This document shows positions 12,556 through 62,639 of a stretch of DNA of 64,000 nucleotides, one piece after another (positions within the stretch are counted from its first letter, which is position 1; every line of letters begins with the position of its first letter). The notes beneath the pieces are model-generated. The model had not been told where the DNA came from. It was given only the letters and a program-made list of their open reading frames with translations, and made no database searches. The translations under genes were made by a program, and so were the position numbers. Source of the stretch: Hydrolagus affinis (lineage: Eukaryota). The stretch spans positions 62,001-126,000 of the forward strand of contig JAAILG010000201.1 in assembly GCA_012026655.1 (NCBI GenBank), read 5' to 3'.

Positions 12556-15500
12556 CAATAAAACCAATCAATTACCATCTGTCAGAATGAGTCAACTCCA
12601 GCTGTGGTTTTGAGAGTTTAATTTGCTCTTCCTGTATAACATAGATTAGCACCTCTTTGTCAGACAGCTGAGAGTAGGGTTGGCAGGCATTCTCAAACAA
12701 CTCCCATAATACGACACCCAATGACCTAAAAAAGGTAAAAGTGAAAATGTCAGATTTGATCACTCACAATATAATTCTCTATCAAAGACATTAAACGAAC
12801 CATATGTAGTAACCAATGTCACAATTCTACCAGAAGACAGATGTATTTACGGTTTTAATATTTTCCTTTCTGTACAATCAAAGGCAGTTTAGCTGTGTGA
12901 CATCTTATATAAGTGCTTGAGTAAAGTATTGGAAAAAGGCCAGTCAGCTCATCCTCCACTGACTGTATTGGCTTTCAGATTTTCAGTATTCTGCTAAAGG
13001 ATCATCAGAACAACAATTTTTCAGTTATTTGTTTTCAGAGCATTGACAAAATACTACAAATGACTCCCACAGAAAAATGGGTGGAAGTCAGATATTGTAT
13101 ATTTGCACTACAGGTAATTTCTCCCTCCCAACCTCTTGCAGCAAACGAATGAACTGAAAACTAGACATGTCTTTGCTAGTTTCAAACAGCATATTGTTGT
13201 TATTGGTAGTAAGGATACTGTTACAGTAAGAGAAAGCCAGGGAGAATTTAAATCATAGTGGCTACATCTCAAAAGGATTCATTCCTATGGCGTTTGGTTG
13301 ACAGTTCACCAGTCATTGCTGACTCTGAGGCCACATCCAAACAGCAACTGGTTGCAGCGTAACATCACACCAATCTGCCTCTTTTGAATTTCCAGGACTG
13401 ACTGGAACTTCAAAATTGTCGCCCTCTCCCCACAATGATCCACATCAATGGGCTAACCATGTCCTGCTGTTAGTGTTGGCGTGCTCCCTCCACCTCTATG
13501 ACTTCCCTACCAACCTGTCCATTCCCTTCACTCAGTGGCCTGTGGCTGGTTCCATCCTATCCATCCTACCATTGGCGGCAAGCCTTCAGTCACTCTGCCC
13601 CCATTCTTTGGAATTCCATCCCAGAACCGCACCAGCTCACATCCTCCCTAGCTTTCTTCAAGTCCCACCTCAAGACCCTCTTCTTCAACCATGCCATCGC
13701 TCAACCACTTTCCCCTTCTTCCCTCAACGATCCCGACCCCAGCTTGGGTCAGAAACACTGACTGTCCAACGCCTTGGGACATCCTTCCAACGTGAAAGGT
13801 GCTACATAAATTTAATTTGGTTGTTTTTATCATTGCAGTTGATAGCTGAACTTGCCCATTGAGCGAAGTACAGAAATATGGTTACAAAAAGCGTTTAACA
13901 TTGATGAGCATAGGCTTACCAAATATTACTCTGTTTTGTCTGTTCTGCTATTACCATACTCCCATAGACATCACCTACAAGCTCAGGTGCAATCCAGCGC
14001 AGAGGGATATTCTGCCCATCATTGGTTCCATAATCCTCCTAAATTTTATCGAGCGGGGAGAAAGATTTAAAGAAAAAGTAGTTTCAACTTACTGCTAGGT
14101 AAACAGAGGCGTGCAGAGTAAGGAAAGTTATCCAACATTTTGCCCTGCCGGAAATCAAACCCAGGTCTCTCGCTTGCGAAGGTGAGTGCTCTAACCACTG
14201 AGCTACAGGACACCATATGAATTTGTATCACATTTCACAATAGAGACATATTTTGCTTTTAAATTCTAGTTACACATAGACATTTTACATTTATGTAGCA
14301 AAAGAAAAGTGAAATTATTTCCACAATAAGCAACACAATAATTGCAGCACACATTTTACCCCTACATTTTAATTCTCCTGCCTACACTGAGCTAGGTGTG
14401 CATTAACATAGATATCCTAACAAGCTTTTTCAAAAACTTAAAAATGTTCACTGTGATCTGTTGGGAGCTCGAAGGTGACTTAGGAAATAGTTACACAGTA
14501 AAACATTTCAGAACAAATACTCAGTTCCCACACACTAACAAGTTAAATGGTAATATGTACTCAAATTCAGAGACAGCTGTGTGACAACCTTATATATAAT
14601 CTGAAAATGCAATTGGACTTCTTCTGCAGTTATTTGAGAAACAAAGAAATTGCATTTTTTTAAAACATGTTTAGCTTATGTAGAAAGAATGCAAGTACAA
14701 ATATGGTTTTGCTGACAATTTTACTCTGCCCAGAATCATCCTCATCAGGTGCATTTACACAAGTCATCTTGCATGTCATTCTAACCACTTGCAATAGATG
14801 ACCTTTATCTATCCTTGGCTAGAAAATAATATCTGGTCCTAAGAGGCATTTGCTACCACCCCATCAATTTAACAATAGCCGTATATTTTCAAGGATTAGC
14901 AATCAGGGTGGTGTCGATGAATGGTCGGTATTGAATGGATATCTGTTTGATATTCAAGTAAAATACAAGGGAAAAGAGCACCATTTATGAACAATATCAA
15001 TATTTAAATCCTAGAGCAAAAGAAAGATATGACATTCACCTATATAGGTTTTTAAAATAAAATTTTTGAATGAAACAATATTTGGTCAGTTCCTTGCTCA
15101 ATTTGTAAAGTGCCAAATTTAGTGCATAAAAGATTTTGTGCTCAGAATAATGTAGAATTTAGCCTTCGAGTCACATAACCTGCTTTTAGTTTGCTGAGCA
15201 TTGAGATGAGCACTGAAAGAAGCGTGTGTAAAAAAATATTTAAACCACTTACCCTGTATCTGCTGAGGCCTATTCCATAATCTCCGACTTTTACAGTCAA
15301 GTCTGCTGTGAGGAAACAGCTTCGTAGTGCTAAGTCACTGGCAGGACAGAGACGGAAACAGGAAGCAGGAATGCCCAAATGGAAAAGGCGAACAGTGGAG
15401 AAATAAAATGTCAGTCAGAGCTCCGATGCACATTGGATCAATAACTGACCGTTGGTAACAATTATCCTAATAAGGGAACTGCATGCAGACAGACTCACCT

Positions 15501-42500: not shown

Positions 42501-45500
42501 GATTCATACAAATTCAATCCACTGTCACAGCATATGATAAAAATGACCAAACTGAAACAAAGACTAGGCAATTATATAAACATTTGTATACTAGCTATTG
42601 TCAGTAGCTTAGAAACCATTTCAGGCCTAATATTTTTTGAAAGCACAAGTTAATTGTTATTCAACAATAACATGAATGTAACAGGTCAGTAACTTTCTCA
42701 GACTTATTGGCGCAGGACTAGTATCACCTTAGAAAAATATGGTATCCTATGTATTTATTAATGTAAGATTAAATAATAGTTAAATAATTAGAAATGGCTC
42801 CGATTTCATGTTCATGCATTAAGTACATCATTATTTAGTACAATTCATAATAATAAACCTTGCATTTTATATAGCACTTTTCACATCTTATCACTGTCTC
42901 AAAGCACTTCACAGAATATATGTTAATTGACTGCATACTATATTTGTGGGCGAAAGGCAGTAGCCAATTGCGCACAGCAGTGTACCACAAACCGTCATGG
43001 ATTGAAATGACCAATTCTATTTTATTATTGTGGATTTTTTGGACGGATTTGGGGCCGCTCTTAGCCACGAAAATAGCAAGACCTTTTAAATAAAGATAGT
43101 ACAGTTAGTGGTCCATCCAGTATCATGATAGAATTTGAATGTTATGTTTCCAAAGTTGAATACCCCACCAACATATTGTTTGTTCGGGAACACAATGACA
43201 AAGAGGCACTTTGGAAAATTATTCAAATTTACGCACTGCCATGATGCAGTTGCTATTTTTGAGAGAGAACTGCTAATAGAATTTTCTTTAGTCATTTCTT
43301 CCATTCTGGTCTGCCAAAGTTCTCTCCCAGTTAGTTCCCAAATCACCATCAAGAACAGTAAAGGCAAAGCCTTGAATCAGGGACTATGATGACAATCATA
43401 TTTTCATAGAATTATACAGCACAAAAAGAGGACATTCAGCCCATTCATTGCATCTGCGCCAATTCTTTGAAAAGAGCTGTCCAAATCAATCCCACTCCCC
43501 AGCTCTCTCCCCGTAGCCCTGTAAACCTGTCCTCCCCAAATAATTATCTACTTCTCTCTTAAGAGTTGTTAGCAAAACAGCTTCCACCACCCCTTCAGGC
43601 AATGCAGATCCAAACAACTCACTGTGTGAAAACATTTCTCCTAACCTCCCTTCTGTTGCTTCGAATAACTATTTTAAAACGGTATCCTCAGGTTACCGAC
43701 CCACCTGCCAGTGGAAATAGTTTATCCTTGTTTACCCTATCAAATACCCCCATAATTTTGAAAGTTACGAGGAGCTTTTGAAAACTACCTCTAAAGAGCA
43801 CCTTTCACTTTCAGAGGACGTCCCAAGGTGCTGAATAATCGAAATCAGGACAGGACCATAGGGTGGGGTGCAGGGTTGAGATGAGGGAGAGCAGATAGGT
43901 AGGAGGGAGGCCAAAGGCACAATCTTGATTTGGACCTCGAAGGAGGTAAGGAAAGGAGCAAGGCAAAGGGATTGTGGAATGGAGTTCCAAAGCATGTGGG
44001 CTGAAAGCCCAGCCACCAATGGTAGGGCGGGAGACAAGTTGCAGGCCGGAGTCTGCTGAATGGAGGGAGCAGACAGGTTGATGGAGGGTCAGCATGTCAG
44101 AGAGGTAGGAGGGGGCAAGGCCATGGAGAGCCTTGAAAGTGAGGACAAGGATTTTTAATTCTATAATCTTGAGGGATGGGGAGCCAGTGGAGCTGGGTGA
44201 GGATGGGGGCGATGGGGTCATGGAGCCTGGTGTGAGAGAGGACACGAGCTGCAGAGTTTTGGATGATCTGCAGCTTGTGGAGGGAAGAGTTGGGGAGGCC
44301 AACAAGGAGGGAGATTCCGTAGTCAAGCCTTGAGGTGTATATATGAGGGTTTCCAGCAGTCTGAGGGATGAAGCAGTGGCTGTAGAAAGTTGTCTCTCAT
44401 ACATTACTTGATGTCTGACAGGAAGTCATGGAATCATCAACAACAAAAAAATTACATTTGTATAGTGCCTTTCACATCAGGAGTATATCCCAAGTATCAA
44501 ACAAGACACATAGGTTCCTGACTGGCTTGATGAGGTGGAGTGTGAATCCGTCGAGGTTGTCAGATTATCCAAGTGCCCAGATGACATCCAACTCTCTCTC
44601 TGCTTCCACCCTCGATTCCAGGACAAATGACATCCTGACAGACGGCACTGGCGTGAGCAAATCAGTAGGGCCTCTGTCTTGTTGACATTCAAATGTAGAA
44701 AGTTAGCTCTCATCCAGTTAGTCTGTCAGGATAACAGTGGTCCTGGAATCAAGGGTGGAGGCAGAAAGATAGTGTTGGGTGTCATCCGCATTGTCACCAA
44801 CAACAACAAAATTACATTTACAGAGTGCATTTCGTGTCAGGAGGACGTCACCAAGAGAGAGCATATAGATGTTGAAAAGGAGATGGCCAAGGAGTCGTGA
44901 GAGACGCCACATGTGGGCTGGAGGAGAAGCGGTTTGTGGCAACAAAGTAGAAACAGTGGGAGAGATAAGGTTCAAACCAGGCAAGAACAAGTCCATGAAG
45001 ATTGAGCTGAGAGGAGAGGTGATGTAGGATAGAGTGGTCGTCAGTGTCGAAGACAGTACAGAGGTCAAAGGAGGACAAGGAAGCAGAGAGAGCCTGGTCG
45101 CAGATGTTCAGAATGTCATTAGAGACTTTGACCAGGGCTGTTTCTGTGCTGTGGGCAGCATGGAAGCCAGATTGGAGGGGTTCATAGACAGAATGCCAGG
45201 AAAGCAAACAGCAAAGCTGGGACATGATGACTTCTTCCAAGGCCTTGGAGACCAAAGGGAGGTTGAAGATGTGGCGGTAGCTGGAGAATAGGGATGGGTC
45301 CAGCAAAGGTTTTTTCAGGATAAGGGTGATGACAGCTGTTTTTAAAGGGTGGGAACATTGCCAATGGATAAGGAGAGATTGATGATATCAGTTAGGAGAG
45401 AAGCCAGGATGTGGAGCTGGGAGGTGAGAAGAGATGTGGGGATGGGATCGAGAGAGAAGGTAGTGTGCTTTATTTTAGAGATGATGGAGGTGGTGGTGGG

Positions 45501-48500
45501 GGAGGGAAGAAGAGATAGGCTCAAGAGCAGGGCATGAGTGGGACATGAAGTGGAGGTGATGAGGGGGGTTGCAGTGAATGGTGTAGAGGTAGCCGAACAG
45601 ATCCCCTTGATTTTGGATTCAAGGAAATCCAGCATCTCTTCACATTTGGAGGAAAGGATGGGTGAGGCGTGGGAACGTGGACGGAGGAGGCAGATAGTGG
45701 TAGATAAGAGGAGCCTGGGGTTATCCTTGTCCTCCAAGTTTATCTTGGAGTAGAAGGAAGATTCATGGAGGCAAGAACAGAGCGGCACTTCTTGGTGTGG
45801 TCAAGCCAAATCTGCTGATGGACAGTTAGTTTGGATTTGGTCCAGGTGCGTTCAGCGGCTCACACTTGTGCCTTGAGGGATTGGAGATGGCTGGTGTACT
45901 AGAGCAATTTACTTCATCACAAGTATACAGTCAATTCACTTTACAATATATTCTGTGAAACGCTTTGAGAAATCTAGAAGACATGAAAAGCACTATATCA
46001 AATGCAAGGATTATTATTATTAGCATTATTATTATTATCATCAAGTCCTGGATGACAGCCAAATTTCTCAAGCTGAATATCAGCAAGACCAAGGCCCTCC
46101 TGATTGGCTTGCGCCATTGCTTCTGCACCTCAGGCACTGGCAGCATCAGCATCCACAGATGTACACTCCACCTCACCAAGCCAATCAGGAACTAGGGCAT
46201 CTTGTTCAACCCTCAATTGTCTTTTCTCCCCCACATCCGTGCCATGACCCACTCTGTCTTCCCCTACCGCCACAACAATGTGCGATTATCACTACCTCAC
46301 CCCTGAGGCAACCAAAACCATCAAACACACATTTGTCATCCCAACACTCAACCATGGGAACCCCTTGTCGGCTTCCCCAACTCCTCCATCCACAAAGAGA
46401 TTATTTTGGGCTTGAATGCACAGAAACTCTTCTAGTACATTTTAGTTCATCTTGTTGGAGATCATCCAGAACTCTGCAGCTCTTGTCCCCTTCCGCAGCA
46501 AGCTCTGTGACCCCATTAATCCCACTGTGACCCCACTGACCCGCTCCACCATCAGTGGCTCTTTTAGCCTTTCTAGACACACCCTTTGGAATTCCATGCC
46601 ACAGTCCCTTCGCCTTGCTCCTCCTTCCAAGGCGTGACTCAAGACCTTCCTTTTCAACCTTTATCCACCCTCCTACCTCTGTGCCCTCCATCAATCCTAA
46701 CCCCTGCCCCTCCCCCACCACACATGGGTCCTGATCCCTGACTGTTCAGCGCCTTGGAACATCCTCCTGACATAAAAGGGGCTCAAAACAAAAGCAATTT
46801 TATTGTTGTTGCTGCCTTCCCTGATCCCCACCATCACTCATCTCGAGTCTGGAGCACTGATTGTCCAGTGCCTTGGGATGTCCTCCAGACAAATGTAATT
46901 TTGTTGTTGTTGGCCAGGAAACTGGGAGAAATTCACGTTCACACAGGCAGACAAGGCCTTGATTTAGCATCTCATCAGAAGGATTGCACCAAGCGGTTAT
47001 ACACAGATTAGTTCACCTTTTTGGAGATCAGCTCTCTGATGACACAGCAGCAGCATTCCTGAAGGAGGAGTGGTACATTCCCAAGGCATACATTGCATTT
47101 CTGGTTCACCTATGTGTAAAGTGGATCGTACACTCTGATTACATAATAGGAGTTCTTTTGTGCTGTTTACCTTGGGGTTCATACCTGTGGTTACCGGTTT
47201 AGAATCGGATGCTAATTATTGCGTTGAACACAACCTGAGAAGCTAGTGGTTGTCTCCAATAATCTTTCGAGCATTTTGGGGCACTTTAAATTTGTATCTT
47301 CTTTTTTCAATTTGTTCTCATATTTTAATGTTGGGGGAAGCTTATTCTGGTCTCTTTACTCTGTCAAATTTCTAATATGGACTATATTATTCAGAGTGCT
47401 TATTTTTTGCTGTATTCGGTCCTAATTCTCCTTATCCATTCTATTGTTCCAGTGTGATTGTTTCATTTTATTAAGTAGATTTTGACTCAGGCATGAGAAA
47501 AATCCTTCCTTCATCTGAATCACATGCTCTTAGTCTAGAAAAGATTTTCTGGTTTACTGTACTGTGTGCCCTGCTACAATTAAATATAATTTTAATAAGA
47601 TACATGATCTTCAAAAACGCAACAAAGGCTAACTTGGTGCCATAAAATTATTTTGTTGCAAGATACAGAAACCGAACCAAATGCTACACCACATAGGTCT
47701 CACACAAGTCAATTTCAATTATTGTAGCAACAGCCTTGTAAACGTTAGCTGCCAAGTGCAGCAATGGCAATTCTTTCTGCCTTTAATAACTTCTGTATCC
47801 AAATATCAGCCAACATGTAATTCAATGCTCATCAACAACGATAACATCAGAACACAAAATACATCAAGCAATAAATCAATTTATGTATCAATTTCCGAGT
47901 ATTCCCTTTTGAAATTATAGTACGTAATGAAACACACAGAGCACTATCAAACGGTTGTACAAATTGTAAAACTTGTGTGGTTAGTTTTTCAACTGGCCCT
48001 TTGCCCCTTGGTTGAGCACTTGACCTATTACTTCTAGCTTGCAGAAACATCTTGTGCCAGCTGGCCTAGAGTTGACTCATTCCTTCTCGTTCAAAGTACA
48101 CAATCCCGTGTGCTGATCCAACAACATTCCCACCTTGCAACGTCAACATAAAGCTGATGCATCTAAAAATGCTCAAAATTGATTTTCCTTCTGATACCGT
48201 GCTCCCCTGTGTCTTTATGCCCTAATTTGATTTTGAAGGACTGAAGCATCAGTTCAGGTTTGGTTGCTGTTCACAATCACCATCTGATGCAATTTCTGCT
48301 ATGCTAGGGTTTGAGATGGTTGGGTAGTAGAAGCACAATAAGCAGTGAAAATATTCAATTTCTAGATGTACGAATAGAACACAAGCACAACCAATAAGCA
48401 AAAAAAATGTATTGACAATCAACAAAGCATTTGATTTTAACAGTATGGACATAGACTTCACTCAACAAGCTAGCTTAGATCTGGCCAGTGAAGCTTTCCC

Positions 48501-52574: not shown

Positions 52575-52790
52575 AAAACAAATTGATGGGAACACTCAGC
52601 AGGGGTCAGGCTGCATCTATGGAGATAGGAAAAATTAGTCAATATTTTGGGTCAACAACCTTTCTTCAGAACCCAGTTCTGACGAAGGGTCATGGACCCA
52701 AAATGTTGACTGACTTTCCCCATAGATGCTGTGTGGCCTGCTGAGTGTTTCCAGCAATTTCTGTTTTTGGTTGGACTTCTAGCATCTGTA
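52575..52790. mobile_element. Inverted pair of Penelope-like terminal fragments
   Basis: ~52575-52672 is the reverse complement of the unit at ~52674-52790. Confidence 0.6.
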
Positions 52791-52829
52791 ATCTTATTGT
52801 GTTTTGTTTAGAGGTAAAATAATGCTCCT

Positions 52830-53125
52830 TATGTGCTGAAAGTTCCAAGGCACTGAACAATCGAAGACAAGGGTCCTGAGGTGTGCCTAGAAGGAGGCAG
52901 ATGAGTGAGCGAGGTGAAGGGAATGTGGGATGGAGTTTCAGAGAGTGGGGGCAGAGAGTTGAATGCCCAACCGCCGATGGGGTAGAACAGGTTTGGGACA
53001 TGGAGGAGGTCGAAGCCTGCTGAGCAGAGGGAGTGGTGGCTTGATCAGGATTTCCCAGGTTACAGAGGTAGGAAGGGGCAAGGCCATGGAAGGCCTTGAA
53101 GGTGAAGATGAGTATTTTGAAGATG
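52830..53125 (-). mobile_element. L2 3' fragment
   Basis: [19 protein letters not shown] peptide. Confidence 0.82.
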
Positions 53126-53129
53126 AAGA

Positions 53130-53400
53130 ATCCTTGCATTTGATATAGTGCTTTTCATGTCATCGAGACATCTCAAAGCACTTCACAGAATATACTGTAA
53201 AGTGAATTGACTGTATTTTTGTGGACGAAACGTGGCAGCAGTGTCCCACAAACAGTTGTGGATTGAAAATGACCAATTTATTATTGTTTATTTTTGAGGG
53301 ATTATTATCAAGTTTGTGGAGTAAGGAAACTTGCCCAAGGTTTCGCCCTGCCTGGAATTGAGCCCAGGTCTCTCTCTTGTTAGGCGAGTGCTCTAACCTG
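53130..53400 (-). mobile_element. Near full-length tRNA-derived SINE
   Basis: Head remnant, body ctgtttgtgggacactgctg, and tail gcactatatcaaatgcaagga. Confidence 0.88.
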
Positions 53401-56400
53401 TACATAGCCACATTTTGATTGCAGCAGCTCCACTCCCACGTCTTTATTCCTCTCTAAAGGTTTATGGTGGGCTGGAGAGGGGGGGCAGTGGGGAGGGAAG
53501 AGGAGCCTCCATTTCACTCAATCCTCTGAGGGTTTGGAGTAAACCTTGGGACGTCCTCCTGACGTGAAAGGCGCTCTATAAATGTAATTTGTTGTTGTTG
53601 TTGTTCGGGGGCCAGTGGAGCTGCGCGAGGGTGGATGTGATGGGTCACAGAGCCTGGTGCAGGAGAGACATGAGCTGCAGAGTGAGTTCTGGTTGATTTG
53701 CAGCTTGTGGAGGGAAGAGTTGAGAAGGCTGAGAAGCAGGATTACACTGAAGCAAATGATTAAGAGGTGATGTTCGCAAAGTTTTCAGGATCCTAAAATA
53801 AGCTTTAGATAAAATGGACGCCAATAATAAGTTTAATGTAGTCAAGAATTCCACAAGGAGGTCAAGCTCAAAGAAGCTGAATAAGTGCTTTAGATTTAAC
53901 TACAGTATATATGAAGGACAGATTGCCCACGATAGCATAGTGCACAGTGTTGCTATTTCATGAGGGGTTTTGGAGAGGGGAGAAGATAATGAGAGATTGT
54001 GAACAATTGTATTTAACAAAAGTGTTCATTGTCTTATTACCAACCTGATTGACCTAATGATCATTTCCACTTTTATGCATTCCTATGTTGTGTATTTCAT
54101 ATTTTTCAATCTCCGCACGACCTCAGGTACTGGTATTGTATTCATAAATAATAGATCTACGCCTTTTTCCTTTTGTTTAGTGTGGCCCTTTTAAGTGTTG
54201 CCAACACAGTTCGACATTATTTGCATTCAGTTAAAATGTCATGGGACTCTCTCACCCCTCCCCCCACCCCCTGGCTATATTTCCTTCATTTGTGTGTATT
54301 GGGGGGAGGGTATGGGGAAGAAGAAGAGATTAGTTGATAGCTTATTGATATTTTATTGGGAAGCATAGATTTGACAGAGGTTTATAAAAAGGCATGTGCC
54401 GATGCTAAAAGTGGGATTGCGTTTGAAGCCAAGTACATTTATGATGACCTTTCAGATCCCAGAGTTCAGTTCCAAAGCTCCAATGGTGCACCACATGTAC
54501 AGCATTTTGTTAGGCTGCCAACATCAAGGAAATGTTTGGAGTGAGATTCATGATCACAGTAAGTGAGATCCTTTACATGCCCATTTGAACCAAAATAAGT
54601 TTTATTTTTCACAGTGAGATAAAGGAAAATCATGTTTCAACCCTCATTTAATCTTGATAAGACAAATCAAGAACGCTGAAAAGGAGATTTCTAAGCAATT
54701 GGTTTACTGGATGTGTGGTGGAATAATTCAGAACAAATGAGGTATGGTTGACCCGTTATAACATCAAACCATCCACAACATAGACAACTATGCCCCAATC
54801 ACCTCCAATTTCTGCTGATTGTAGGCTTTTATGGGGATGGATTGGAAAGAATACTGTACTGATACTGAAAGGGGTAGCAGAATCATTGCCAGAGACTGGC
54901 GGCAATTGAACAAGTTGGGCCAGGGTACTAGATGCACTTAATCCGCTTGTGTATTAATGGGAATACATGGGTTGACATTAAGAAGGTATGAGATCAAAAG
55001 GGCCTTAAACCTCTTTAGTGATTTGTGTTATCATCAAACCTTTAAATCTAATCCAAGGGCAGGAATTGGATGGACGAAGTGAAGACAAGCTCTTAAAGTG
55101 TTCTTTTGAAATATATAGGTGCCATAATTATGTTAATTTAAAATGTAATCATACACTTAAGTGCACAAAATGTGAAAATAGGGGTGTGCTGTTGCTATTT
55201 TCACCTCTCAGACTTCAGTTTTACCCACAATGGAACAAAAGATTCTTTCTGGCATCTGTCAGGATCTTGAATAAGTCTGAGGAGTCACAACCCGAATGGG
55301 CATCTGTCACAGCTCAATAATTCATTTACTCACACTAAATAGTGTACAGGCTTTCACAGCAGGCTTAAAAGACAGATCAAAATCATTTCTGACCTATTCG
55401 TAAAACATTCTGTTTCTTATACACTCAGACTTACACCAGGAATTATTTTCAAGTTCAATAAGCTTTAAATGCATTTCATGAAAACACCCCTTACCTTTTG
55501 AGCATCGTGGGTCAGGAGTAGTTATGTTGCAAGTTGCATTCTCCTTGGGGCATAGAAAACTGGAGAAAAGCTGGATGCTTTTGCTTAGAACCGGTTTACA
55601 GAGCCACAGAAACATGGATAATCCTTCCATGACAACTGGTGCACAATCTAGGGAAAGTAAAATTGAAATGCATTTTTTTAAAATAAAGGCTGAACTGAGG
55701 GATGCTTTTAGTTAGTGCAACAACAACAAATTAATACTTGTACAGGGATGGAGTTCCAGAGGTTGGGGGCAGAGGGGCTAAAGGCTCGCCTGCCAATGGT
55801 GGATCAGGGGAGGGGTGGGGGCGGGCAGAATGTATGGGTGAGTGCAGCCATATTATATAAAAATATAATTTTACAATGTAATGTTCTGCTCTCAAAATGT
55901 GTTTGGGTATGTTTGGAAAGTTATGTACGATTTGTGTCTCCTGCTAGCACTAGCAGTGAATTTATGCATCTTGTATTTGATCCAGTGGTACATTTAGGAC
56001 ATCAGAAAACAGAAATAATGAGCCAATCTCCTGACCAAAGTGGAAATGAAACATCATATTTGAAGTTGGAAGACTGAGACATTTCAAATATATTTGACTT
56101 GGAGAAATGTTACCGTTTTAAACTTTAGGGAACGAGAAAATGTTTTTAGCACAGGGACAGCAGTAAAGCTTCAAAAAAACTTTTAAAATTAATATTGTAC
56201 ATTGTACAGTATTGTACTAAAACAACACCATATCATGCTAGTAAAGAATGAATGGCTAAAGTAGCCAAATTCCTAAATCAATTAATACTGCCAAATAAAA
56301 ATTGATTCCTTCATAACATCAAACCAGTTATCAAATCAGCAAAAATACTGATAAATAAATTTTATCCTTTCAAAAATGATTGTGAATTAAATCTGCTAGT

Positions 56401-56979
56401 TATTCATCAAAATGTAATTTTAAATGTTTATGATTTTTCTATCACCTAATCACAGTGTATTTTGCTAAACCTGTCTGCATTAGAATGTGCAGTACTGTAC
56501 TTTCAGATGGATGCCACCTATCTGATATGAGCTGAAATTGCAGTTTCTCACTCCTCATCTGTGTTATAAAGAGAGATTAAAGGGAATAACTCACCAGTTT
56601 ATGGTGCTCGTTTCATCAAAATAGCTCAGGACTGTGGCCAAAATTTTGTGTCATATGCAGTGAATTTTTGCAGCTGAATGCGCCAGCCCCCAGTCCTGCA
56701 CTTGTATAGTATGTCACCTTAGACTACGTTTTCATATTCTGGGTAAATAAAAAAAGTGCGGGAAACACTTTACAAATTTTGAAAACTCCCTGTCTGTCGA
56801 CCTTCCCAACTCCTACCTCCATAGGATGCAGATTAGATACAAATATAATTTTGTTATATTGAGAGTAACATTTTGCTGCTTATCTATATTTTTCTCTTCT
56901 CATTCAAAGAAACTAAATCTGAAGAAATAACACATCATAGATTATACAAAAAATGTATTAATGTTTTCTTCTACAATAA

Positions 56980-57622
56980 AAAGAACAGCTTTTAAAAGAT
57001 GCAAAATGCAGTTTCAAATCAGTGGTCTCATCCAGGAATAAGTACACATCTGTGTCCTCAACATGTTTCTTCAAATATGTTTCACGTTCAGGAATAACCT
57101 TCAAATACGTATTAAGATGCCAAGGATGGTGTTGGAATAGCTGTTTCCTGTACTTGTACAGAAACTCTTGTAGCTTCTTACAGCAGCTTCTTCAAGCGGT
57201 ATGTCTGCTCTCATCAAACACTGCACAAATACCAATATCAATTCATTCCTCTCTAGAGGACACAGTGGCTCAAGCAAGTTGTCAGAGCAAGTTGTTTTTA
57301 AGGTCCAGATCCAACTAGTAAGGAAAAAATAAAAATTGATCTTCATGATGTATTTGTCATTAGAAATGTTCTGTCAAATGCAATTTTAAAAACAAAAAGG
57401 TGGGAGATTAACTTGTTATCAGAGAAATTAAGATTTTCTTTCAAAATTAAAGTGAAAGCAACTAATGATCCAGTTGCATTTAACATAGATATGTCAGAAG
57501 TACTTTACCTTCATTTTTTTCATTATTGCTGCTGCCATGCGTTCACATCAATGGTGTACTTGCGAACATGGTCAATTATGTGACAGCAAATGCGGCAAAA
57601 CAACTGCCCCTCTTCATAAGAG
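56980..57622 (-). pseudogene. Degenerate CGGBP1-like hAT transposase gene with a predicted intron at 57315-57508
   Basis: Minus-strand peptides in colinear order: [23 protein letters not shown] (BED-type finger), *KQLALTTCLSH, RNELILVFVQCLMRADIPLEE, KLQEFLYKY, VYLFLDETTD. Frameshifts and stops are present. Confidence 0.75.
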
Positions 57623-57624
57623 TC

Positions 57625-57932
57625 ATCATCCTTGCATTTGAGTTTGATATAGCACATTTCATATCTTCTAGACGTCTCAAAGCGCTTCACAGAATACACT
57701 GTAAAGTGAATTGACTGTATATGTAGACTGAACACGGCAGCCAATTGCACACAGCAGTGTCCCACAAACGGTCATGGATCGAAAAGACTTAATTTTTTTT
57801 TGAGGAATTATCAGGCGTGTGGAGTAAGGAAACTTGCCCAAGGCTTCTTCCTGCCTGAAATCGAACCCAGGTTTTTCGCTTGTCATCCATAACTATGTGA
57901 AAAGCGCTATATCAAATGCAAGGATTATTATT
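57625..57932 (-). mobile_element. SINE (minus, 57625-57885) plus a short plus-strand SINE tail (57895-57932), at the 5' end of the CGGBP1-like relic
   Basis: Standard SINE body and head remnant, followed by an inverted tail gtgaaaagcgctatatcaaatgcaaggattatta. Confidence 0.85.
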
Positions 57933-58309
57933 AAGTCAAACAAACAGATATTGCAATAAACATTTTGTGAATGCCTTTTACATGACAGTATTTGCAAAAA
58001 TAACTTGCAATGCTACAGTACTGTACTTAAAATGCAAGGGCAACTATGTCCAGATAGTGGCAGCAAACCACAACAAAGAACATAACCTCTGCTCCTGTTG
58101 TTGAATACACAGTATTTACACATTCTTTATGCGATCTACAAGTTTGCTAGTTCCACACTTTGGCTTCCTCCTGGCTAATGAGAAAAGGAAATAGAGTTAA
58201 AGACTCTGGCAATACTGAGGAGATATTTATATTCAACATGCTGTAATTAGAGATGAACAATAAATCATAGATGACATTTTAATATGAATTTCCTACCTAT
58301 AAAGAGGCA

Positions 58310-58525
58310 TAATAATAATCCTTGCATTTTATGTAGCACTTTTCACGTCTTCTGGACGTTTCAAAGTGCTTCACAGAATATACTGTAAAGTAAATTGACG
58401 GTATATATTTAGGTAAAACGTGGCAGTCAACTGCACATATCAGTGTCCCACAAACGGTCGTGGATTGAAATGGCCAATTTATTATTGGTATTTTTAGGGA
58501 TTATTATTAGGTGTGTGGAGTAAAG
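58310..58525 (-). mobile_element. SINE lacking tRNA head
   Basis: (AAT)n tail plus body motif. Confidence 0.83.
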
Positions 58526-58529
58526 GATT

Positions 58530-58772
58530 GTTGACATGACCTCAGGAGAACCTCCCTTCACTTTTCTAATAGTGTTAATGGATTTTTGACATTCACCTGA
58601 ATAGACAGACTGGACATTGGTTTATCATCCAAAGGACAATATCTTCAACAATGCCCCCACCCACCCAGCAATGCATTAGAGTATAGCACAGACTGTGAAT
58701 TCAATCCCCCATGTGGGGTTTGATCCCACAACCTTCTGACTCAAAGGTGAGAGTGCCACCAACTGAGTCAGT
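58530..58772 (-). mobile_element. Older DeuSINE 5' part (tRNA head plus Deu domain)
   Basis: Head ctcagttggtggcactctcacctttgagtcagaaggttgtggga plus degenerate Deu core. Confidence 0.65.
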
Positions 58773-60740: not shown

Positions 60741-62639
60741 GTAAAGCAAAAGTATTTAATTGTAGAGTGGAAAGAAATTTATGGCGAAGGGAATATGCTA
60801 CAGTAAAGTGCTCGAGGATGTGTAATGGACATTTCTATGCTACAGAAGATCCAATTCGAGAGCTATTATGAAGTGAAGATGACTGTTAAGGACTATCAGT
60901 CAAGGGGGAGACATTATGGGAAACAGTTGACTTCAAAGAGTAGATATTAGACTGGATATTGTGCAATAGACAGAGAAACTAGAGGAAGAAAAAACACAAA
61001 GATTAAATAGTGGAGTCCTGTAATAATAATAATCGTTGTATTTGATATAGCGCTTTATCACGTCTTCGAGCGTTTCAAAGCGCTTCACAGAATATACTGT
61101 AAAATGCATTTACTGTGAAATACACCCACCAGCAGAAAATTACACTGAGTTCAATTTTCAGAAACAATTGCCCTGGACAGCAAAAGCCTTCTCTGAAAAA
61201 AAAAGTTAGGCCAGTGAGGGATCTTCGGTTCTTTAAATAACTGTGATTCATCTCCTGAGTTACAGGCACATACCCTTTAAAGTTAAGTCTTGCTCTTGTA
61301 ATCTCTACATGAGCCGAAACGGTACAAGAAGTGCTGCTCACTCACACGACATCTGATAGTCTAGTCTGCCTGGAATCCTCTTTCATTGCAGAATAAAGCA
61401 CAGCAGAGCAGGTCTTCCAAATTCGCTGATAAATCTGAAGCTTGTCCTGTCCTAAATAAAGAAACACGACAGAGAGAAGGAGAGAGGAGTGGATCAAGCT
61501 TGCAGATTGAAGAACAACATGTGGTGTATGATATATAAAAGCGTGTAATGCAATGGAGAGGAGTCAGCAACAACTCTGAGAGCAGTCAGGATGTATTTTA
61601 TAAGGCCGGGTCAGGACAAAAACACTTAAAATTTGACTCATTAGGCAATCAACAAACTCCATTTCTCTCCTATGCCTTATAAACAAATCTTTCCCTTAAT
61701 TGCTTATAGACCTGGACACAACCTGAGCACAATTACAAATTAGGATTTGTCCCAGGACACAAAAACAAAAACAAAATCACATTTGTAGAGTGCCTTTCAT
61801 GTCAGGAGGACATCCCAAGGCACTGGGGCACACATACATATAAGAAAATATCCCAGTCGTTGTTTTATTCAATGTGTCAACGTAGATTGACTGCATCTCT
61901 TATCATATCAATCATCAAGGTCCTAGCTGTTGCACTTGACTACACTATTGTTGTCGCTTGATAATGAAAAAATTATATTTTTAAAAAATTTGGCTACACA
62001 ATTTGTACTTGGGACATGCTGTGTGAAATTGCTGCATTTCACCCACAAAATACAGTCACTACACTTTAAAACATATTCTTTGAAGCGCTTTCAGATGGAT
62101 CAATGATGTCATAAGACTCTATATCAAATGCAAGGATTGTTATTATCACAGCCTTAATTGGGTTTATAGGAAAAAATATAACTGCTATTAGTGGCAGCAC
62201 ATTTAAATCTCATTGACAACCATTGACTCAATTTATCTTCTTTCCCTTTTCATCAACAACAGTATATTATTTAGATAAAGCTTTAAACATTTCGGAGTCA
62301 CACAATTCTCGTTATCTTTGTGTTTCTAGTATCAAATAAATCATTTAGAATCAATTCAATCTTTCTCTGTCAATTGTCCCTCATCTCTTATTACCCCCAG
62401 ACAACATATCTAAGAGACTCTTTTTCAATCGAATGTCAGTGATTACTAATATTATTATTGATAATAATACTACTATTAATAATAATCATTGCATTTGATA
62501 AAGAGTCATTGACATCCAGCGGACATCTCAAAGTGTTTCACAGAACATACTGGAAAGTATAGTGACTGTGTTCTTTGAAGGCGCACGCCCAAATATTGTA
62601 GGGCATGAAGGGGGAAAAACATACTTATAGATGATTATC

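Follow-up and report, generated by a model that had tools for sequence, protein, structure and literature searches.

A probable relic of a multicopy, intron-bearing hAT transposon family with a CGGBP-like N-terminus in the chimaera Hydrolagus affinis

The window analysed here is the whole stretch of 64,000 nucleotides (64 kb) of Hydrolagus affinis DNA described above. Towards its far end, on the minus strand, lies a broken gene fragment that can be followed from a zinc finger to the beginning of a catalytic domain. The initial annotation had described it as a CGGBP1-like hAT transposase gene that contains an intron and has decayed, broken by frameshifts and by a SINE. This description is borne out in part. 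What lies there is the decayed fragment of a hAT-type gene, interrupted by an intron, in which a BED-like finger, the helical part for DNA binding and the first acidic motif of the catalytic domain (DETTD) can be recognised. The reading frames change across the relic, and a SINE, three copies of which were aligned, lies on its 5' side. In the direction of the gene, the features are as follows.

57934 to 58011, minus strand: possible N-terminal leader remnant (..FCKYCHVKGIHKMFIAISVC..), directly 5' of the SINE, with no start codon visible; a weak candidate.
57628 to 57935, minus strand, oriented like the gene fragment: tRNA-derived SINE, defined from three aligned copies, its tail boundary uncertain by about 5-10 nt.
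57547 to 57627, minus strand: block 1, the core of a BED-type finger, 27 aa, frame mod 0, placed by tblastn of Callorhinchus milii paralogues.
57509 to 57547, minus strand: end of exon 1, 13 aa, in the shifted frame mod 1, placed by alignment of P0002 and P0005.
57315 to 57508, minus strand: intron-like gap of 194 nt, GT..AG, with a pyrimidine tract ahead of the AG; part of a repeated DNA unit.
57185 to 57314, minus strand: block 2, where exon 2 begins, with the helical DNA-binding part, placed by tblastn of P0002, P0006 and P0005.
57018 to 57184, minus strand: block 3, frame mod 2, KLQEFLYKYRKQ...NTYLKVIPERETYLKKHVEDTDVYLFLDETTD, placed by phmmer and by tblastn of P0001.
56958 to 57017, minus strand: unrelated tail past the breakpoint (LKLHFASFKSCSFYCRRKH, then a stop at 56960-56958), with no counterpart in P0001.
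56770 to 56879, no strand assigned: piece of a very abundant interspersed repeat near the relic's 3' side, outside the hAT family.

All peptide strings quoted in the initial annotation are present on the minus strand, as seen when the minus strand of 55400-58600 was read and the pieces were translated. ADIPLEE at 57208-57188 and DETTD at 57032-57018 lie exactly where they had been placed. The finger string of 23 aa is also there, at 57615-57547, but its outer end had been set at 57620, which is off by 5 nt. As had been implied, RNELILVFVQCLMRADIPLEE (mod 1) and KLQEFLYKY (mod 2) occupy separate frames. Along the minus strand the order of frames is mod 0, mod 1, then, across the intron, mod 2, mod 0 or mod 1, and mod 2 again, with stops in addition.

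Block 1 runs on in its own frame (mod 0) into VNAWQQQ, followed by two stops. Block 2 reads LDLD (mod 2), then either P*KQLALTTCLS (mod 0) or TLKTTCSDNLLEPLCPLERNELILVFVQCLMRADIPLEEA (mod 1), and ..LERNELILVFVQCLMRADIPLEEA terminates at 57185. Another frame then takes over, in which KLQEFLYKY...KKHVEDTDVYLFLDETTD extends to 57018. Block 3 is the predicted linker and first strand of an RNase-H-like catalytic domain, with the DETTD motif. This motif presumably marks the position of the first catalytic Asp in hAT transposases with DUF659 or DUF4371 regions.

Compared exhaustively by phmmer with a set of 1.84 billion representative proteins, block 3 has a single match (E 4.2e-6, 73% identity). The matching protein, P0001, is a 160-aa protein of Callorhinchus milii with the UniRef name 'DUF4371 domain-containing'. 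It extends 109 residues beyond DETTD and matches Pfam DUF659 with an E value of 2.9e-5, under the curated cut-off. In tblastn on the window, P0001 aligns to block 3 at E 1e-11. Searching with P0001 leads to P0002, a 147-aa protein of the same species that contains all three blocks in order. In tblastn of P0002 on the 64-kb window, block 1 is matched at E 5e-10 and blocks 2 and 3 jointly at E 8.6e-14, and nothing comparable is matched elsewhere in the window. Because of these P0002 values, the phmmer value of block 3 and the lack of a comparable match elsewhere in the window, the similarity is regarded as real homology.

The family in C. milii comprises at least seven proteins, P0001-P0007, of 117-161 aa. 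Five of them, P0003-P0007, were found by a search with P0002 and by a five-member profile, and all come from C. milii; P0003-P0006 are 53-69% identical to P0002. In tblastn on the window, block 1 is matched most strongly by P0003 (E 2.3e-12, 89% over 28 aa), followed by P0002 (5e-10), P0007 (9e-10), P0005 (1.7e-8) and P0004 (2e-8). The end of exon 1 corresponds to residues 52-63 of P0002 at 75% identity (E 0.69 alone, colinear with the rest) and is matched by P0005 at 82% in tblastn. For block 2, residues 68-98 of P0002 align at 57.5% (E 8.6e-14 jointly with block 3), P0006 aligns in three pieces and three frames (1.7e-5), and P0005 aligns over WIWT..DNLL (4e-4).

Several of the paralogues are themselves damaged. 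P0006 is without CxxC, a Cys is displaced in P0004, and P0005 is RefSeq XP_007903228.1, a model titled 'LOW QUALITY PROTEIN: CGG triplet repeat-binding protein...'. The paralogue models also differ in the frame used for the same linker. No full-length transposase of the family is among the proteins retrieved, all paralogues having 117-161 aa; the word-index searches covered proteins of 0.55-1.75 times the query length, a range in which full-length transposases may be missed.

Domain and structure searches add little. In Pfam at E <= 10 the three window pieces have no match, and no zf-BED (E <= 10) or Hermes-DBD match is found in the window pieces or the paralogues. No C-terminal hAT dimerisation domain (PF05699) is detected by Pfam in the window pieces or in P0001-P0006. 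P0002-P0006 have weak, unrelated Pfam matches in single members only. Among PDB sequences block 2 has no match, block 1 has only weak zinc-ribbon and Hermes-BED rows, and the paralogue profile A2 has two chance rows. HEAT-repeat clusters of the ESM Atlas that came up with block 2 were dismissed as noise (low recognition). An AlphaFold2 model of P0002, built from a seven-row alignment, reaches a pLDDT of 55.9 and is too poor for use; Foldseek of this model against the PDB gives nothing at E <= 0.001, the best E value being 1.2.

Between the end of exon 1 and block 2 lies the gap of 194 nt. The initial annotation had described a GT-AG gap of this length, and it is indeed present, with GT at 57508-57507, AG at 57316-57315 and a pyrimidine tract. 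P0002 reads ..AAAIKKKIVDLD.. across the gap without extra residues. In the mod 1 frame, exon 1 closes on a whole codon at 57509 and exon 2 opens with LDLD at 57314, so that the splice would be in phase 0; this agrees with P0002, which has ..CERKAAAIKKKIVDLD.. unbroken. A phase-1 splice into *KQLALTTCLSH, as had been proposed, does not hold up, since neither homologous exon-1 frame gives it. From mod 1 the splice leads to LDLD in phase 0, and from the BED frame (mod 0) it would lead into WIWTLKTTCSDN. The KQLALTTCLS frame is homologous to P0006, and is entered by a frameshift within exon 2 and not by the splice.

The gap thus fits an intron of the family gene, and the protein models suggest that it would be spliced. 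Paralogous contigs cover 57320-57484 at 5-9 times the flank depth in one DNA run (X1) and at 13-20 times or more in another (X8). Because of this raised depth over the 194 nt, the gap is assigned to the repeated unit and was not inserted at the locus. In several paralogous contigs, stretches of the intron and of the exon-1 end are left out or replaced. The initial annotation had looked to RNA reads across the 57509/57314 junction; none is found in two RNA runs (X13 and X14; 27-30% of each read, 3'-biased).

The fragment has decayed in several ways. Exon 1 contains one frameshift and exon 2 contains two or three; stops occur in every frame. At the start of exon 2, one or two frame changes are counted, depending on which paralogue serves as reference: block 2 has two relative to P0006 and one relative to P0002, with stops in mod 0 and mod 2. 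An additional frame change lies between ADIPLEEA and KLQEFL, and block 3 has small in-frame gaps relative to the paralogues. In the finger, CRIC and the first His are kept, and the stretch that in the paralogues carries the next His (..DEH.K..KH) is deleted. After TID about 8 codons are gone, where the paralogues have ExxKSxKx, with a His, between TID and CER; a frame change accompanies this loss. The predicted codons for the distal His of the finger are therefore missing from the relic.

Loss at the 3' side is more severe. For residues 52-160 of P0001, tblastn gives no match in the window, and the DDE domain is reduced to its first motif. One paralogous contig of X8 ceases to align at 57019. 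The C-terminus of P0003, LKLHFCIF, resembles the tail that the window has beyond DETTD, and the junction may therefore be common to another copy. Together with a depth that remains raised at 56880-57017, the ending of P0003 indicates that a truncated derivative may be what multiplied.

On the 5' side, the SINE adjoins the finger. It begins at about 57628, close to the 57625 given in the initial annotation, and a span of 8 kb contains three copies, this one included (repeat families D1-D4): they lie at about 53126-53380, 57628-57935 and 58314-58560. It separates the possible leader remnant from the BED finger, and the RIVLYP stretch that is conserved in the paralogues is missing here. At 57895-57935, at the 5' end of the SINE, there is an inverted SINE tail where the copy at 53126-53440 has its full tRNA-like head. 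This suggests that 57628-57935 consists of two SINE pieces head to head.

Beyond the SINE, 57934-58011 may hold a further remnant of the same gene. Its local alignment to the N-terminus of P0006 scores 35, a value reached by 0 of 300 shuffles (18 comparisons in all). The alignment to P0004 scores 26, which 42 of 300 shuffles reach and which is not significant, and this stretch is absent from the tblastn results of the paralogues on the window. The resemblance of the leader is suggestive only. A little farther out, about 100 nt 5' of it, FVVVCCHYLDIV at 58042-58077 (minus strand) shows a non-significant resemblance to the finger cores of P0005 (tblastn E 1.1) and P0007 (E 4.2), and may be a chance likeness or a scrap of a second copy.

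Copy number and transcription were assessed with Logan contigs of two DNA runs, X1 and X8, and with raw reads of two RNA runs, X13 and X14, both single-cell and poly-A, all aligned to 56000-57625 at a likeness of at least 80%. X1 carries the window exactly, five pieces among the matches listed having 0 differences and a depth of about 4-6. X8 carries it with about 1% differences, in the relic and its flanks alike; differences between X1 and X8 number 3/358 and 3/159 in the relic and 4/308 and 3/259 in the flanks.

Over the pieces and the intron, DNA contigs pile up 3-20 times. Summed over 56990-57099, 57265-57374, 57430-57484 and 57540-57594, depth is 15-46 in X1 versus about 5 in the flank, and 250-830 in X8 versus 10-55. 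Between 57100 and 57264, only single-copy depth is seen at the 80% threshold. The additional contigs include 7-8 distinct paralogous contigs with common variants, for example 57076 T>A. Summed contig depth is not the same as copy number, and is read here only as pointing to several to some tens of diverged copies.

Among the RNA reads aligned, none is at least 95% like the locus (0 of 78 in X13 and 0 of 68 in X14, or 0/146). In X14, 19 reads from 15 starts fall at 57039-57097; all carry paralogue variants and diverge from the window beyond, and therefore a paralogue is transcribed, while the locus itself is not seen. The RNA sample covers about 27-30% of each run and comes from 3'-biased libraries, and so does not prove the locus silent. 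Most aligned RNA reads fall on the high-copy repeat at 56770-56879. The summed depth of this repeat is about 1600 in X1 and 41000 in X8, against flanks of 5 and 10-55, and its other copies continue unlike the window on either side. It probably represents the conserved tail of a LINE or SINE family.

The label 'CGGBP-like', given by the initial annotation, is consistent with the NCBI name of P0005 and with the nearest ESM Atlas cluster of P0002. That cluster, 'CGG triplet repeat-binding protein 1-like' (score 0.96, 192/256 features), may be P0002's own cluster. The next clusters are zf-BED, the Hermes DNA-binding domain and the FAM200/ZBED5 RNase-like families. Both the name and the cluster are leads for the label and not tests of it. 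Searched against 955 candidates, the paralogue profile A2 finds only C. milii proteins at E <= 0.01, with no amniote CGGBP1. CGGBP1 itself is without a Pfam match according to the portion of Yellan et al. 2021 (PMC8097297) drawn on here, and therefore the Pfam blanks are not evidence against the label.

Several features are shared with the CGGBP-type hATs and the CGGBPs, the 'hAT-19' subclass, as described in the consulted portions of Yellan, Yang & Hughes 2021 (PMC8097297) and Frith 2022 (PMC9004415). In both, the N-terminus combines a BED-like finger with a helical DNA-binding part behind it, proteins of <200 aa are annotated from short copies that have an intron or are truncated, and the family has many copies and is lineage-specific. 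Kept in the window are the CxxC, a Leu placed two residues ahead of its first Cys, the first His and, within ADIPLE, the Pro, residues of the kind that the same part of PMC8097297 gives as conserved. Unlike CGGBPs, the copy in the window is broken and codes for no protein.

The portion of Yellan et al. 2021 (PMC8097297) used here defines CGGBPs through the InterPro/Panther CGGBP1 model (zf-BED together with the Hermes DNA-binding domain), derives CGGBPs from CGGBP-type hATs that are mainly hAT-19, and reports many independent domestications. It discusses CGGBP-like hATs for bony fishes, lamprey, coelacanth, insects and fungi; its main text, the supplementary species table aside, makes no mention of Callorhinchus, sharks or chimaeras. 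The consulted part of Frith 2022 (PMC9004415) supports a hAT19 origin of CGGBP1 and reports a scan of the C. milii genome, and lists no chimaera hAT19 fossils. In the part of Morbia et al. 2024 (PMC11575156) used here, CGGBP1 is treated as derived from coelacanth-type CGGBPs.

A second likeness is to hAT transposases with DUF659 or DUF4371 RNase-H-like regions (FAM200, ZBED5 and ZMYM6 types). P0001 shares block 3 at 73% and matches DUF659, and the Atlas structure rows of P0002 are proteins of this group (TM 0.46-0.54). In contrast to the group, the window ends at DETTD, the DUF659 score of P0001 is under the Pfam cut-off, and PF05699 is not seen in the members found. With the BED domain of Hermes transposase (PDB 8eb5) the finger block aligns over query residues 5-32 and chain residues 39-66, at a non-significant E of 0.14, and ribosomal zinc-ribbon proteins score just as high; no Hermes entry appears in the profile search or the fold search.

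The initial annotation had also spoken of an undescribed family. No describing paper was found in the literature searched, but the proteins are already present in UniProt and RefSeq. Holocephalans possess an intron-bearing hAT family of CGGBP type, whose protein fragments in UniProt and RefSeq are mostly named 'uncharacterized'.

Homology, colinearity, the breaks, multicopy status and the presence of the intron within the DNA repeat are shown. In all likelihood, 56958-57627 on the minus strand is a non-functional relic from a multicopy chimaera hAT transposon family. The transposase of this family would have begun with an N-terminus of CGGBP type, in which a helical DNA-binding part comes after a BED-like zinc finger; one intron would follow the finger. 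The relic would retain about the first 150 codons, as far as DETTD, the catalytic core and the dimerisation domain being gone. Its copies would have spread through cut-and-paste transposition of the intron-bearing element or of a deletion derivative, and their decay would have been neutral.

Three other explanations can be considered. A chance likeness of the peptide blocks in AT-rich non-coding DNA has next to no probability: the window pieces themselves are without a significant Pfam, PDB or Atlas match, which would fit chance, but three colinear blocks align to one 147-aa protein (E 5e-10 and 8.6e-14), seven proteins align to the same place, and block 3 reaches E 4.2e-6 against 1.84e9 proteins. 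A single hAT insertion could instead have been domesticated here, as a CGGBP-type regulator upstream of a gene of LMTK type, and have decayed later. The fragment does lie on the same strand as the kinase gene, has an intron and is cut near the end point of CGGBP-type proteins. It is, however, one of many copies; frameshifts (1 in exon 1, 2-3 in exon 2), stops and a SINE break it, and the finger ligand region is deleted. The divergence between X1 and X8, about 1% in relic and flanks, makes no constraint visible, although the numbers are tiny. Local domestication is therefore very improbable. The once-domesticated CGGBP gene of the initial annotation falls for the reason which that annotation had itself named, namely that the paralogues and the contig depth make this one of many decaying copies.

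Alternatively, the locus could be a dead member of a host family of short domesticated CGGBP-like genes, as in coelacanth, that spread by gene duplication. Its members would consist of a BED and Hermes-type DNA-binding domain, cut near DETTD and with an intron, and the others would still bind DNA. Six of the seven paralogues are the DNA-binding N-terminus only and have <200 aa, which is the CGGBP architecture in the consulted portion of Yellan et al. 2021 (PMC8097297). P0003 ends LKLHF.., like the window's tail, and depth is raised at 56880-57017; these two points suggest copying of a truncated unit. Transcription of a paralogue is also seen (19 reads and 15 starts in X14). On the other hand, several paralogue models are damaged or differ in their linker frames, unlike what purifying selection would leave, and P0001 goes 109 residues into the catalytic domain. 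Because P0001 reaches that far, the source is taken to be a transposase and not a short gene. On balance, a host gene family is unlikely. A more specific proposal, slightly less probable still, is that chimaeras possess an expanded CGGBP-like gene set of their own, in parallel with the 62 genes of coelacanth, and that this set arose from a truncated, intron-bearing hAT derivative cut just past the first catalytic motif; the window copy would then be a dead member that records the shared truncation point. If true, this would be an independent domestication of CGGBP in the oldest living branch of jawed vertebrates.

For the transposon relic, which is the preferred reading, transposition is a presumed means of spread, because neither TIRs nor target-site duplications were found around it; the repeat analysis that gave families D1-D4 and D6 shows no TIRs either. 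A comparison of 56000-57017 with 57936-58700 for inverted 12-mers with at most 1 mismatch gives 4, all of one palindromic motif; ten shuffles gave 1-11. This motif (58010-58027, 56484-56501 and 56201-56218) was rejected as marking element ends, 56330-56769 being single-copy. The near-palindromic motif, with a TACAGTACTGTA core, is found four times around the relic, at 56201-56218, 56484-56501, 58010-58027 and 60795-60812 (repeat family D6).

The locus can make neither a transposase nor a CGGBP-like DNA-binding protein, because it is truncated, has frameshifts and stops, has lost finger codons and is interrupted by a SINE. It has no gene-level role, and is an ordinary genomic fossil and not a lost host gene. 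The locus itself is of little weight, being a transposon fossil with no sign of function, and has a modest value as a record. The family could join repeat libraries, so that such pieces are masked and not called as genes, and it widens the known taxonomic spread of CGGBP-like hATs.

Elsewhere in the window, an exon at 15145-15378 (minus strand) encodes a kinase catalytic loop, DLALRS..GDYG. Its best PDB match is LMTK3 (6seq, E 6e-6), which puts a gene of LMTK type about 42 kb to the 3' side of the relic and on the relic's own strand. In translation, this exon has Ser where Asn is usual. At 43800-46700 and 52690-53139, both on the minus strand, open reading frames with reverse-transcriptase-like and LINE-tail-like translations are, judged by eye, decayed LINE copies.
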